From: Histomonas meleagridis 2922-C6/04-290x
Taxonomy: Eukaryota > Protista > Parabasalia
Assembly (NCBI GenBank): GCA_020184695.1
Contig: JAANOX010000046.1
Location: 78,466 to 142,465, forward strand
DNA: 64,000 nucleotides
Reading direction: 5' to 3'
A program made the position numbers and the translations under genes. The notes below the pieces were generated by a model. The model saw only the letters and a program-made list of their open reading frames with translations, ran no database searches and was not told where the DNA came from. Shown here piece by piece: positions 53,167 to 58,544 of this stretch (position 1 is its first letter; each line of letters opens with the position of its first letter).

Positions 53167-54156
53167 TCAATTATTATTTTCGTCATACACGTCAATTGAG
53201 TCATATGTTTGATATCCTTCAGCCAATTCTTCTGTTGATTTTCCAGGGAATGGAAGCACTGGACACGCCCATCTCCATAATGGCCCGTTTCCGCAGAATT
53301 CATCCATATTTTCTCTGCACGTTTCCTTTCTGAATGCATTTGGCGGAATTTGGTTCCACATTTCCCATCTCGTTCTGTTTTGTGATGAGTTGTATATTGT
53401 CGGTATTAAGAAAGAGACCATCATTGAGCAAAATGCAATAGCGACAACGAGCATAATGATGACAAAGAAAAAACAAATCGGAAAATTGACATTTGAAAAA
53501 CATGGAATAATTATTCGTATCGACCATATTGCATAAAGAAGTGTATATATGGAACCATATAAGTTAAATAACATAAAGAATTTGACATTGCGTTTACCAA
53601 TCCATGACGCGCACCATCCACATAAATGATCTGGTTGAAGAACATATCGTTGAGCTGATCGAAAAAAGGCTGATCGTGGTGGCCGTGGTTGGATTTGTAC
53701 CCACTGATATTGGTCTTCATTAGAAACAACACCGGCTATTGGATTTTCTTCGCCTGGTAATTGATTTTTATCTGCTTCGGAAAGACTCCAATAAAATGGA
53801 AAATAACCTGGACCTTCAATAATAACTAAGAAGTATGGAATAAAAAATAAAATCATAAAAATTAAAAAAATAATTGTTGAAAGTATGGATTCTAATAACG
53901 AAACAAGAGTGAATGATCCCCATACAATAACAATATATGAAAAAAGAAATATGATTCCAACAAGGAGTGGCATTGTAAGATCTACTTTCCAATGTTCGAG
54001 AAAAATTGATAGAGAATTTACTTGATACTTATTGCAACAACAATACTTACGTGATAAAGCTTTTGTAACACCGGGGAAATTTTCAATGTTAATTATATCT
54101 GATGGATTTCTACCAGATTGTTCTAATAAGTTTCCATTTTCTGGTACTTCTCCCAT
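53167..54156 (-). CDS. DHHC-family palmitoyltransferase, DHLC variant
   Basis: Four TM segments and PRPPRS...PDHLCGWCASWIGKRN.KFF. Confidence 0.85.
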   Translation of the reverse strand: MGEVPENGNLLEQSGRNPSDIINIENFPGVTKALSRKYCCCNKYQVNSLSIFLEHWKVDLTMPLLVGIIFLFSYIVIVWGSFTLVSLLESILSTIIFLIFMILFFIPYFLVIIEGPGYFPFYWSLSEADKNQLPGEENPIAGVVSNEDQYQWVQIQPRPPRSAFFRSAQRYVLQPDHLCGWCASWIGKRNVKFFMLFNLYGSIYTLLYAIWSIRIIIPCFSNVNFPICFFFVIIMLVVAIAFCSMMVSFLIPTIYNSSQNRTRWEMWNQIPPNAFRKETCRENMDEFCGNGPLWRWACPVLPFPGKSTEELAEGYQTYDSIDVYDENNN

Positions 54157-54251
54157 TTTCCCCTTTAACGTTTTTCGATCGTAAAATAAAAACGACGCCG
54201 TTTATAACAAACGGCCCCTCAAATGGCGCCAAAACGGTTTCCCAAAAGTTC
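54157..54251. promoter_or_regulatory. 95-nt bidirectional promoter (DHHC/CLK) with M3-like motifs on both strands
   Basis: AACGGTTT (+) at 54233-54240 and GGCCGTTT (-) at 54216-54209. Inverted repeat GCCGTTT/AAACGGC at 54197-54215. Confidence 0.55.
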
Positions 54252-55304
54252 ATGAATACAAAACAGCCTCGGACAGAACAAGATAGGCTGTTTTGTCATC
54301 CAGGAGATATTATAGGAAAAAATTACAGGGTTATAAATTCTGCTGGTGAAGGAACATTTTCAAATGTATATTGGTGCAAGGATATCCAATATCAATCCGA
54401 TGTCATCGTTAAAGTTTCAAGATCAAGAAGATCATATACCGATGCAGCAAATGAAGAAATAAAGACAATGGAATTACTCAATCGACTAGATCCAAGCCAT
54501 CGATTTTTTGTTCAATATTTTTCTTCTTTTTGTTTTAGAGGACATGTATGCCTAGTGTTTGAGAGACTTGGCCCTTCGCTATTTGAAACCCTTCGATATA
54601 ATTACTTTAATCCATTTCATATTGAAACTATTCGTAATTTCATGTGGCAAATTGTAAATTCTGTAGATGTTCTTCATAAAAACCAAATGGTACATACTGA
54701 CCTTAAATTAGAAAATATTTTACTTAAAGGAGGTCTTGTAAACAGAGAAGGAAGAGATATTGAAACTGGAAGAGACTCAATGTCGATTAGATTAATTGAT
54801 TTTGGATCACTTGATAGTGGTTCTGCATGGCATTACCACCTTGTTACAACCAGACATTACAGAGCACCTGAAATACTCATGGGTCTTCGATGGGGATATG
54901 AATGTGATATTTGGAGCTTGGGATGTATACTTGTTGAGTTATCACTTGGAAGAATTTGCTTTGATGCAAGGGATTTAATTGAACATTTATATTTAATACA
55001 ACATATGATTGGACCAATACCTAAAAAAATGTGGGTAAATTGCACAATAAATGAGTTGAGACCTTTTATACGAGAAGGACACATTAGATCAAGTTCATTA
55101 AACAGACAAGCTTATGAAGAAGCTCGAAGAAAGCCAACACTTCGACGCATTTTAGATTTCGATTCATCTCTTTCAGACCTTGCATTGTGGTTACTGAATC
55201 CTGACCCTGATGAAAGACCAAGAACAGATTCCATCCTCAGACACCCGTTTTTTAACGTATTCCACAAACGGTCGTCATTCAATTACCACGGAAAAAGCGG
55301 TTAA
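54252..55304 (+). CDS. CLK: CLK/LAMMER-family CMGC protein kinase
   Basis: GEGTFSNV, HTDLKLEN, IDFG, VTTRHYRAPE and EHLYLIQHMIG (LAMMER equivalent). ATG 54252 preferred over 54102. Confidence 0.9.
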   Translation: MNTKQPRTEQDRLFCHPGDIIGKNYRVINSAGEGTFSNVYWCKDIQYQSDVIVKVSRSRRSYTDAANEEIKTMELLNRLDPSHRFFVQYFSSFCFRGHVCLVFERLGPSLFETLRYNYFNPFHIETIRNFMWQIVNSVDVLHKNQMVHTDLKLENILLKGGLVNREGRDIETGRDSMSIRLIDFGSLDSGSAWHYHLVTTRHYRAPEILMGLRWGYECDIWSLGCILVELSLGRICFDARDLIEHLYLIQHMIGPIPKKMWVNCTINELRPFIREGHIRSSSLNRQAYEEARRKPTLRRILDFDSSLSDLALWLLNPDPDERPRTDSILRHPFFNVFHKRSSFNYHGKSG

Positions 55305-55338
55305 GACCGGCCATTGTCCATTCTGCATTCTCAACAAA

Positions 55339-55434
55339 GTATGTACTCTTGGCTCTGATGACTTTTCCTCTCGACAGAAATTATGTTGATAGCTTTTAAA
55401 GTGCCTGAGCCACATGTTTCAAACTAACACACAG
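55339..55434 (+). other. Canonical trichomonad spliceosomal intron (96 nt) downstream of the CLK stop codon
   Basis: Starts GTATGT at 55339 and ends ACTAACACACAG at 55423-55434, the fused branch-site/3'SS motif of T. vaginalis type A introns. Confidence 0.85.
55350..55412 (+). ncRNA. Candidate intron-encoded box C/D snoRNA
   Basis: Terminal stem TGGC/GCCA, box C TGATGA 55356-55361, D'-like CAGA 55375-55378, C'-like ATGTTGA 55383-55389, box D CTGA 55405-55408. Confidence 0.65.
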
Positions 55435-55534
55435 AAATATAATTAATTTGTATGTTATATAATTATTAATAAATTTTATATTTGTTATAAATAAAAGTGT
55501 TTATTGTTTTTACTTGTGTTATCGAGGAATTACG

Positions 55535-55557
55535 TTTTTTTTTTTTTTTTTTTTTTT
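55535..55557. repeat. Poly-T run (23 nt)
   Basis: Read directly. Confidence 0.9.
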
Positions 55558-55699
55558 AGTTTTGTTATTTTTTGAATTTGATCATTTTGAAATTTTCTTT
55601 AAATATAGGAAATTCATGCTTCCTTCTTTCTCTAATGCTAGTGCATTTGGACAAATATTGTTAAAGATGGAATGTTATTTTATTCTTATTTAATTACAG

Positions 55700-56025
55700 T
55701 TCAAAATGCTAAAAATATTAATTTATATATTAATATTAATATAATATTTGCCTTTTTTATTTAATGTTATAAAATCTTATTTGGAAAATATTTAAAATAC
55801 TTAAAACAGCATTTTTGATGGCATCCAAAAAAGGTCATACTAAAATGGTTAAATTACTTTTTGCGAAAAAAGGATCAAAAATAACTGCAAAAGATATTCG
55901 TTTGTCTTGTCCATGATTTATATAAATAATTCTGGATTTCAAAATAATATGTGAAAATTATTTAAATTATTTAATACAGCACTTATATTGGCATCTGAAA
56001 ATGTTCATATGCAAAAAATTAATTA
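55700..56025 (+). pseudogene. Interrupted ankyrin array remnant, locus 3
   Basis: 89-nt spacer (55717-55805), 30-codon block TAFLMASKKGHTKMVKLLFAKKGSKITAKD (55806-55895), 80-nt spacer (55896-55975), then a degenerate TALILASENVH block. Confidence 0.8.
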
Positions 56026-56369
56026 AATATTAATAATCATGTTTTTCAAATTAAAGAGGTATTCTAATACACAAAAATTGAGGATAAGCTAAATAACTTT
56101 AATATAAGAGATACAGATATATAATTTTGATTCAGTTATTGATTAAAAATCAAAAATAAGTTTATAAAATTGTTTATGTGATATCTTTTATCGAAAACAA
56201 AGAATACCGTAGTGACACCTCCTTGGGAATAAACTGTACTATATTTGTTATTAGTCTATGGAGATTCGATATGAAAATCCAGTTTTAGTCATTAAAATTT
56301 AGTGAATACTTTTTATTAAAAAGCAAATACCTGCTCATGACTAAATGTAATTTAGAAATTAATAAAAAA

Positions 56370-58046
56370 TTATATGTTAATAAAATCTTCTTCTTTGAAA
56401 TCTCCAACAAATGGATCTTCTTCAATGTTTGCCATATGGTTAACAATAGAAAATGCTTCTGTACTTTTATCATTTACTTCCTCGCTTACCACCATTTCTT
56501 CATTTTTATTTATATTTCGATTATGAACAACAACAACAATTATTATTATGATTACAATAATAACGACTAAAACGCAAACAATAATGATGATAAGAACAGT
56601 ATTTGTTTGATTTTCATTATTAATTTGTTCATTTTGATTGAAAATCGTGAAAAAGTCCGAATAAAAACTAAAGAATGTTGCATACTGAATGACTGTATAT
56701 TTATAATATAAATATTCTGTGATCTTATAAATGATAGATGAAGATAACATCGACATTATATAAGTATTTGATATATAAGAATAATTGGTAATTGTTTTAA
56801 TAAGTGCCATCGAAAATTGTAATGTTAATGAATATGAAAATGTAGTGAAAAATTCAAATGAATTTTCTATTTTAAAAGTATTAGAATTTGTAAATACACA
56901 CGACTTAGTAAATGTGTTAGAATTAGAATAAGCATTTGATTTAGTAAAAGTATTTGAATTAGAATATGTATTTAAATTAGAATATGTATTTGTATTAGAA
57001 TATGTATTTAAATTAGAATATGTATTTGAATTAGAATATGTATTTGATTTAGTGAATGTGTTAGAATTAGTAAAAGTATTTGTGAATGTATTTGAAAATG
57101 TATTTGATTTAGTAAATGTATATGCTGGGATACATTCTGAAATTAATTCATAAGTCGTATCAAATTTACCAAATGTTGTATTTTGATATTTATTTAATAC
57201 CATAATTTTATTGTCGACTGTAACTTCATCAAAAGCGAACCCATTAATATCAGGTTCTTTTTCACCATAAAAGTAAACACATTGAAGATTGTTACATAAA
57301 GTGAATGAAAACACTTTAATTTCAACAACGTTTTCTCCAATGAAAACAGTAGCTAAATTTGTACAAGTTGAAAATAAACCGTTTGGTATTGTTGTTACTT
57401 TATTTGAAATAGAAAATGATTTTAATTTTAAACAATTACAAAATGCAAAATTACCAAAACTTTCTATGTTATCACAATTCATAATCCCTTCTAATTTGGA
57501 AGCATAAAATGCATATCCATTAATAGAAACAATTGATGAAGGAATTTCAAATATATTATCTTTTTTACCTGCTGGATAAAAGATAATAGTTTGAATGTTT
57601 TTATCATAAAGAACACCATCATCATTAAGATTACAAAAATTGGGATTATTTTTGGTTACTTTATAATACATAATGTTAGTACAATTTATAAAAACTCCTT
57701 CATCAAATGTTTTTACTGAATCCGGAAAAGTGATGGCCTGTAATTTATAACAATGACCAAATGAATGACCTCCAATTGTTTGAACATTTTCTCCAAATGT
57801 AACTGATTCCAAATTTTCACAATAACGAAATGCGTAATCTTCAATTGTTGTAACAGAATTTCCAATATTAACTGAAACCAAAGAAGTCCATTCTGTGAAA
57901 GCAGATTTGGATATTATTGTAATACCTGTAATTATAACATGTTTAGTTGTGTCTTTGTATTCAGATCTTCCATTAAATTCACTCGAACTGCTTATCGTAA
58001 GTGTTCCTGAGGAAAATGTTTCAGTTGAATGCATGAAAAAAATCAT
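56370..58046 (-). CDS. BspA-like (TpLRR) type I membrane protein with 6-aa S/T/N stalk repeats
   Basis: TpLRRs (IGNSVTTIEDYAFRYC), NTFTKS/NTYSNL repeats at about 56870-57125, TM VLIIIIVCVLVVIIVIIIIIVVVV, tail EEDPFVGDFKEEDF. Start uncertain: ATG 58046 chosen, alternatives at 58175 and 58190. Confidence 0.8.
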   Translation of the reverse strand: MIFFMHSTETFSSGTLTISSSSEFNGRSEYKDTTKHVIITGITIISKSAFTEWTSLVSVNIGNSVTTIEDYAFRYCENLESVTFGENVQTIGGHSFGHCYKLQAITFPDSVKTFDEGVFINCTNIMYYKVTKNNPNFCNLNDDGVLYDKNIQTIIFYPAGKKDNIFEIPSSIVSINGYAFYASKLEGIMNCDNIESFGNFAFCNCLKLKSFSISNKVTTIPNGLFSTCTNLATVFIGENVVEIKVFSFTLCNNLQCVYFYGEKEPDINGFAFDEVTVDNKIMVLNKYQNTTFGKFDTTYELISECIPAYTFTKSNTFSNTFTNTFTNSNTFTKSNTYSNSNTYSNLNTYSNTNTYSNLNTYSNSNTFTKSNAYSNSNTFTKSCVFTNSNTFKIENSFEFFTTFSYSLTLQFSMALIKTITNYSYISNTYIMSMLSSSIIYKITEYLYYKYTVIQYATFFSFYSDFFTIFNQNEQINNENQTNTVLIIIIVCVLVVIIVIIIIIVVVVHNRNINKNEEMVVSEEVNDKSTEAFSIVNHMANIEEDPFVGDFKEEDFINI

Positions 58047-58544
58047 AAAAATCAGTGGAAGAAAAATTGAGTTTATTTTTTTAACATGTTTGATTGTTTC
58101 GACAAATGAATTTGTTGGAATGCATTTTATCTTAATGAAAAATAATTTAATTATGAAAAAAGTAAGTAAAATCATCAAAAAATCATTCATAAAATAGGAA
58201 AATGTACTGAATTCTTTCTTTAAAACATAAAAATAAGGACAAATAAAAACATGAAATCTTTTAAAAAAAAAATTATTCACTTGAGTTGATGTGCAAAAGG
58301 GGAAATAAGAATTTTGAGGTGTAGCTAAGTAAGTCTATTCTTGTATTGCATTAATAAAACACGAAAATTCTGATGATAATAATAAATCTTTTAAATTATA
58401 TCTTGAATACAACCTAAAACCAGGCAATAATAAGCCATTTGAGTTTAAGACATTGCACGAACTAAATTCAATTAGTATTAAAACAATACATTGAGTTATC
58501 ATGACTAATATAATTTTTCCCGGACTAAAATTGTATACTTTACA

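Follow-up and report, generated by a model that had tools for sequence, protein, structure and literature searches.

Box C/D small nucleolar RNAs (snoRNAs) encoded in introns are known from animals, fungi, and plants, where short introns, including those of non-coding UHG- and GAS5-type hosts and those in untranslated regions (UTRs), carry one snoRNA each. The host exons are uninformative, and the snoRNA has a terminal stem, C and D boxes, and a ribosomal RNA (rRNA) guide that follows the fifth-nucleotide rule. In trichomonads, the number of validated introns does not exceed tens, and it is an open question what a full spliceosome is kept for. Intronic snoRNAs of Trichomonas vaginalis were mentioned as unpublished data (PMC2588526) and were later called 'highly unlikely' in this species (PMC3228867). 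Here, a stretch of 64,000 nucleotides (nt) of Histomonas meleagridis 2922-C6/04-290x (contig JAANOX010000046.1, positions 78,466 to 142,465; called the window below) was investigated. The organism is a parabasalid related to Tritrichomonas, and the GC content of this DNA agrees with the published value of 28% (PMC8529796). It contains a 96-nt intron-like element, the cassette (55339–55434), behind a LAMMER/CLK-like protein kinase gene. The explanation favored here, with moderate confidence, is that the cassette is a snoRNA-carrying intron, in which a box C/D snoRNA of about 63 nt, set in a 96-nt sequence with perfect type A splice signals, would be excised to serve rRNA methylation. Positions are those of the window, and features lie on its plus strand unless stated otherwise.

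The published consensus of trichomonad type A introns is GTAYGT{42,104}ACTAACACAYAG (PMC13548475). Compared with the intron-encoded snoRNAs of other eukaryotes, the cassette shares the features listed above, its rRNA target being a predicted one. It differs in that its putative exons span no more than about 26 and 62 nt, in that it borders on a protein-coding gene and shares transcripts with it, and in that the snoRNA ends only about 11–15 nt before the branch site of an intron whose splicing is predicted. In the T. vaginalis Lsm3 gene (TVAGG3_0535830), the 3' UTR holds a type A intron of about 100 nt, and the last exon behind it measures 78 nt, against 62 nt here. The Lsm3 intron was validated by PCR as spliced, whereas splicing of the cassette is a prediction, and the likeness is one of layout. 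In Giardia, another metamonad, one short conserved motif is reported to tie the maturation of snoRNAs and small nuclear RNAs to intron processing (PMC3510501); both the motif and the mechanism (3'-end formation) differ from the situation here, where the motifs are ordinary cis-splicing signals.

Splice signals and snoRNA anatomy of the cassette

The 5' splice site GTATGT at 55339–55344 agreed with the type A GTAYGT, and ACTAACACAYAG, in which the branch site is fused to the 3' splice site, was matched exactly by ACTAACACACAG at 55423–55434. The two signals were separated by 78 nt, inside the type A range of 42–104. The 12-mer ACTAACACACAG was found as a single copy in the 64-kb window even with 1 mismatch allowed (expected 0.10). 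We estimate that the 12-mer would turn up a few times by chance in a 43-Mb genome with this base composition, and the pair of GTATGT and 12-mer alone is only moderately unlikely genome-wide. A chance origin was excluded because of the box C/D content inside the element and the homologs with identical splice signals described below. The element looks like a bona fide type A intron outside the coding sequence (CDS).

An earlier note on this DNA, made from the sequence alone, had described this element as lying outside any coding region, 34 nt past the kinase stop codon (TAA, 55302–55304), and as running over 96 nt from GTATGT at 55339 to the end of ACTAACACACAG at 55434 with an exact 12-nt trichomonad motif. 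It had also pointed to a TAAA inside the element (55397–55400), to another after it, and to an M3-like AGCGGTTA overlapping the kinase stop (55296–55303). All of these descriptions were confirmed, and TAAA was located after the element at 55470, 55488, and 55492. A coding exon, either an extension of the kinase or a small spliced open reading frame (ORF), was considered and rejected: the kinase ends normally after its HPFF motif, all three frames stop 1–8 codons past the 3' splice site, and the overlapping 43-codon ORF had no Pfam match.

Inside the cassette, a box C/D snoRNA of about 63 nt is predicted at 55350–55412 from box anatomy, fold, and homologs. From 5' to 3', it consists of the UGGC strand of the terminal stem (55350–55353), box C (CUGAUGA, 55355–55361, with a C where the RUGAUGA consensus has R), a 13-nt guide, CAGA, a 5-nt loop, UGUUGAU, a second guide (14 nt), box D (CUGA, 55405–55408), and the GCCA strand of the terminal stem (55409–55412). 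The D' guide lies at 55364–55373 and includes TTCCTCTCG at 55365–55373; CAGA (55375–55378) is a CUGA variant read as box D', and TGTTGAT (55384–55390) is a degenerate box C'. The D guide (55391–55404) holds the TAAA at 55397–55400. The terminal stem UGGC/GCCA was present in the predicted minimum free energy fold, and the 67-nt snoRNA piece folded better than 199 of 200 shuffled sequences (z −3.5).

A permissive Rfam scan of 55200–55600 gave five weak matches, all to C/D box families, and the four on the plus strand (sn2343, SNORD12, snoR126, and snoU54) fell exactly on 55350–55412. At gathering score, Rfam returned nothing across the whole window. Both strands of the window (128 kb) were further scanned with a strict C/D pattern (TGATGA, CTGA 30–100 nt later, and a 4-bp closing stem), and two places were obtained, one of which was the cassette snoRNA. 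The other (18576–18527, minus strand) had no other snoRNA features and was rejected. For a pattern taken from the 5' half of the snoRNA, 0 chance matches were expected in the window. Judged by these features, the cassette appears to enclose a well-formed box C/D snoRNA.

Homologous cassettes and the predicted rRNA target

The S3 Table of a recent study (PLoS Pathogens 2025, PMC12316389) lists 34 motif-predicted T. vaginalis intron sequences as 'not validated by RNAseq'. Comparison of these sequences by eye showed that row 17 (chr_V 6794930–6795042) is the same snoRNA in the same splice-signal frame. Both sequences start with GTATGT, end with ACTAACACACAG, and have, in the same box order, GGCTCTGA(A/T)GAC, TTCCTCTCG(T/A)CAGA, ATGTTGATA, and CTGAGCC; the T. 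vaginalis element differs in its length (113 nt, against 96 nt here) and has another D guide.

A further homolog was obtained when JGI metagenome contigs were searched with a pattern from the shared 5' half of the snoRNA, which gave two matches, one of them true. This was a 101-nt cassette at 309–209 on the minus strand of L006, a 91-kb contig of an uncultured parabasalid, whose boxes, guide, and splice signals were identical to those of the window cassette. The other match, L007, was a chance match in bacterial coding sequence. The uncultured parabasalid (L006, 1–6190; L008; L009) comes from groundwater metagenomes, which is an unusual habitat, as its group is known mostly from animal guts.

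Across the three lineages, box C was CTGATGA here and in L006 and CTGAAGA in T. vaginalis, TTCCTCTCG was invariant, and CAGA, ATGTTGATA, and CTGAGCC were identical, while the D guide varied. The splice signals (6 + 12 bases) were identical at 18/18 positions, including 12/12 of the branch-site and 3' splice-site motif; the spacers between these signals and the snoRNA were unalignable. Pair four of the terminal stem, U-A here and C-G in T. vaginalis, was recognized by eye as a compensatory change. Because 18/18 identity stands beside unalignable spacers, selection on the splice signals is indicated, and because of this selection the cassette is probably spliced. The whole pattern is what selection on splice signals, boxes, and one guide would be expected to produce.

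The likeness is apparently not restricted to row 17, as most of the 18 long type A T. vaginalis rows showed C/D boxes and a terminal stem by eye. The authors of PMC12316389 made no mention of snoRNAs and suggested that such sequences are what is left of genes that are not transcribed, or belong to stage-specific genes. When rows 1–18 of the S3 Table were viewed by eye together with the T. stableri type A rows (100–137 nt), mostly a box C-like motif, a CTGA/CCGA box D-like motif, and a terminal stem were seen, so that most of these sequences resemble carriers of snoRNAs. The guide of row 7, TTCCTCTCGT, was the same as that of row 17.

The guide sequence TTCCTCTCG (9 nt here, 10 in T. vaginalis) was complementary to CGAGAGGAA, which is located in the universally conserved sarcin-ricin loop of the large subunit (LSU) rRNA. 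The sarcin-ricin loop is therefore the predicted target of the D' guide. With CAGA as box D', 2'-O-methylation is predicted at the G after the ricin-target A (the equivalent of E. coli G2661), because of the fifth-nucleotide rule. The TTCCTCTCG guide was not found among the T. vaginalis snoRNAs in PMC3228867. Mammalian SNORD91 is said to guide modification of 28S G4618 in helix 95 (PMC12288042), and is thus a C/D snoRNA aimed at the LSU sarcin-ricin helix, as the cassette snoRNA is predicted to be. SNORD91 probably targets another nucleotide, and no sequence similarity above Rfam noise was seen between the two.

Transcription of the cassette and its surroundings

The RNA data consisted of assembled contigs from four runs of one study, made from long-RNA libraries, and were placed on 54000–56400. 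The main contig of each of the four runs contained the kinase CDS and then the cassette, gapless and with the cassette retained. These contigs ended at 55486 (X1), 55435 (X2), 55496 (X3), and 55525 (X4). In X3, the end was followed by 14 untemplated A, so the material is RNA, and the tail marked a poly(A) site just past TAAATAAAA, at about 55496. Depth was 36–66 and dropped to 2–7 past the poly(A) site. There was no TAAA between the kinase stop and the cassette, the only ones being at 55397, 55470, 55488, and 55492; kinase transcripts must therefore enter the cassette. In this sense, the cassette lies in the 3' UTR of the kinase and is mostly retained there. The presence of the element in kinase transcripts, which the earlier note had left to be checked, was thus established by contigs running from the CDS through the element to the poly(A) site at 55496. 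The junction joining 55338 to 55435 that it had proposed was found in none of the contigs of the four runs.

The X2 contig ended at 55435, the first base past the cassette, and the other three reached 50–90 nt further. This end may reflect cleavage after the internal TAAA at 55397, or an assembly break.

Two short motifs before the cassette suggest that it may also form the center of a tiny host gene of its own. The M3-like AGCGGTTA (55296–55303) overlaps the kinase stop codon and is a putative promoter element of the cassette. It is followed by CCATTG (55311–55316), which resembles the T. vaginalis initiator (Inr), TCA+1Py(T/A) (PMC4693282), with a C in place of the first T of the Inr, and which would place a transcription start at A 55313. 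CGGTT-N8-CCATT occurred once in the window (expected 0.08). It recurred in L006 with its internal spacing unchanged; the distance to the 5' splice site is 24 nt there and 28 nt in the window. Local alignment of the flanks of the window cassette and L006 was not better than that of shuffled sequences, and only CGGTT-N8-CCATT stood out. In the window, CGGTT followed by TCA within 3–10 nt was located directly before three ORF starts, including the kinase ATG at 54252, and the pairing therefore resembles a kind of promoter that is in use in this genome.

Such a host gene would have a first, non-coding exon of 26 nt (55313–55338, within the kinase 3' UTR at 55305–55338), the 96-nt intron, and a terminal exon of 62 nt (55435 to about 55496) that includes TAAA at 55470, 55488, and 55492 and ends at the poly(A) site. 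Ordinary RNA-seq would miss a spliced product this short (about 88 nt), which would account both for the absent junctions here and for the label 'no RNAseq evidence' that the T. vaginalis sequences carry. The separate short non-coding host transcript that the earlier note had offered as one possibility thus gains support from the conserved M3-like/Inr-like pair, and its start is placed by prediction.

The kinase gene itself is predicted at 54252–55304 from its Pfam domain and homologs. The ORF 54102–55304 matched Pkinase (Pfam, E 4e-43), and its best named matches were the Tritrichomonas foetus 'AFC1'/CLK1 (62% identity), a T. musculus protein (59%), and the plant AFC1-3 LAMMER kinases; a look-up of the identical protein returned no record. 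The LAMMER signature is degenerate (EHLYLIQHMIG instead of EHLAMMERILG), and the CMGC kinase domain and CLK/AFC relatives are present. The homologs are 330–345 aa long, a promoter-like pair, CGGTT + TCA(+1)TG, is located at 54235–54253, immediately 5' of the ATG at 54252, and one RNA contig begins at 54270, inside the CDS. On these three grounds the first 50 codons (54102–54256) are probably untranslated, and Met51 is the probable true start. The N-terminal extension of the ORF overlaps the end of a divergent DHHC palmitoyltransferase ORF (53167–54156, minus strand).

Downstream, a run of about 23 T was located at 55536–55558, directly past the poly(A) site region. An ankyrin-repeat gene starts near 55818 (ATG 55818). 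The poly(A) tail at 55496, the T-run, and the falling coverage spoke against the possibility that the cassette is a 5'-UTR intron of this gene, which was discarded. Within the ankyrin-repeat gene, at 55897–55973, contigs of two runs skipped 75 nt and kept 7 other letters (GTGGGAA) between the two flanking parts. Many contigs of 35–50 nt, with a depth of up to about 86,000 and loose ends on both sides, were piled on 55944–56003; this pile is most likely a consensus ankyrin-repeat segment common to many expressed paralogs. Further downstream, an ORF for a BspA-type leucine-rich-repeat surface protein (LRR_5, E 1e-35) was found at 56370–58280 on the minus strand.

Explanations for the cassette and what they would mean

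As a snoRNA-carrying intron, the cassette would be crossed by RNA polymerase II transcripts, namely kinase mRNAs and probably also short transcripts from its own promoter at about 55313, which would be polyadenylated at about 55496. In at least some of these transcripts, the spliceosome would cut out the 96-nt piece, and the lariat would be debranched and then trimmed back to the small nucleolar ribonucleoprotein (snoRNP). The mature snoRNA would direct 2'-O-methylation of LSU rRNA in the sarcin-ricin loop via its conserved D' guide, and what remains of the host RNA after splicing (about 88 nt plus tail) would have no role of its own.

Several points weigh against this explanation. The 55338>55435 junction was absent from the contigs of four runs, which drop rare variants and from which a very short spliced product could be missing. 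The four runs belong to a single study and take the form of contigs, in which start sites and minor forms are invisible. Long-RNA contigs were the only material, and the predicted snoRNA was not seen as a small RNA. The T. vaginalis homolog and its whole class are listed as not validated by RNA-seq (PMC12316389). The Rfam scores were all under gathering (SNORD12, 17.3 bits with a cutoff of 43; sn2343, 16.4 with a cutoff of 60), which argues against membership in these named families but leaves the C/D class untouched. Two of the boxes, D' (CAGA) and C' (UGUUGA), are variants, and the guide would pair over only 9–10 bp. The rRNA target is a prediction from the universal sarcin-ricin loop sequence and not from a parabasalid rRNA, and the promoter interpretation is based on two lineages only.

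The alternative that survives best, which we consider unlikely, is that the snoRNA is cut or trimmed from the kinase 3' UTR or from a short precursor without productive splicing. The conserved GTATGT and ACTAACACACAG would then bind spliceosomal or other factors that tag or build the snoRNP, or that set the RNA ends, and an exon-exon product would be rare or absent. Retention of the cassette in the main contig of 4/4 runs with no junction agrees with this, as does the fact that the whole T. vaginalis class is without RNA-seq support in a deep study (PMC12316389). There is also the Giardia 12-nt motif, which is reported (PMC3510501) to serve both 3'-end formation of non-coding RNAs (ncRNAs) and the processing of trans-spliced introns. 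However, the signals of the cassette match those of validated spliced type A introns, and because they are identical, ordinary splicing is the simplest reading. Moreover, standard libraries would lose a spliced host RNA that measures about 88 nt, rare variants are dropped from contigs, and T. vaginalis Lsm3 has a spliced type A intron of equal size in its 3' UTR.

The earlier note had offered, as another possibility, a 3'-UTR intron behind the CLK kinase that acts as a splicing-activity sensor or alternative-polyadenylation switch. In such a model, its splicing or retention, or polyadenylation at the internal TAAA, would respond to splicing activity and adjust the expression of the kinase. It is true that the cassette belongs to kinase transcripts, that no TAAA precedes the one at 55397 after the stop, and that UTR introns occur in T. 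vaginalis in the genes of three splicing factors, namely Lsm3 and two Prp18 paralogs with 5'-UTR introns of 102 nt (PMC12316389). The contig ending at 55435 is compatible with alternative polyadenylation and proves nothing. However, no type A 3' motif and no guide was found within 1.5–3 kb at seven distinct CLK-ortholog loci (T. foetus, T. musculus, and uncultured relatives), so that the conservation behind CLK orthologs, a check proposed in the earlier note, was not observed at any of them. In L006, the homologous cassette begins about 58 nt past the stop of a ubiquitin-conjugating enzyme (E2, UQ_con) gene, and two groundwater-metagenome contigs of the same organism (L008 and L009) agree on this neighbor; a search for E2 homologs returned only this organism (L008 and L009) and no further lineage.

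Because of the seven loci without cassette and the E2 neighbor in L006, the role as a CLK splicing sensor is without comparative support. The conserved parts of the cassette are snoRNA boxes and a guide, with nothing related to the kinase, and no spliced isoform was present among the contigs of four runs. The proposal of a splicing-activity sensor or autoregulatory switch was not borne out and is regarded as very improbable, and the position of the cassette behind the CLK-like kinase appears to be incidental.

That the cassette is without function today, being either a decaying relic or a set of motifs that stand together by chance, as the few chance 12-mers that we estimate for a 43-Mb AT-rich genome and the remnants of non-transcribed genes proposed by the T. 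vaginalis authors (PMC12316389) might suggest, is hardly credible in view of its 18/18 splice signals, its boxes and guide that are invariant in three deeply diverged lineages with unalignable spacers, its transcription, and the compensatory change in its terminal stem.

The snoRNA-carrying intron thus remains the preferred explanation. Judged by sequence and its conservation, the cassette appears to be a real, conserved, intron-framed snoRNA carrier; an intron-encoded snoRNA in itself is known in many eukaryotes. What the locus contributes is a case transcribed together with a protein-coding gene, with its poly(A) site mapped, a promoter-like pair that is conserved upstream, and a conserved guide toward the predicted target, the sarcin-ricin loop. 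For annotation, it is a caution that regulatory meaning should not be read from a neighboring gene, the CLK link being incidental.

A wider idea, which we hold to be doubtful, is that parabasalid type A signals around snoRNAs act mainly as a device for snoRNA release, the exon-exon product being a throwaway or hardly made. If this were true, snoRNA production would be a main reason why intron-poor parabasalids keep a spliceosome, and it would provide a second metamonad link, after the shared motif of Giardia, between intron processing and ncRNA maturation.

Read as a snoRNA-carrying intron, the locus goes against the published view that these organisms are unlikely to have intronic snoRNAs, and it predicts a directly testable methylation in the functionally critical sarcin-ricin loop. 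Together with its homologs, it suggests that 'unvalidated' type A introns carry rRNA-methylation guides that have been selected across deep parabasalid divergence. Such a carrier role would reclassify catalogued T. vaginalis elements that had been left without explanation.

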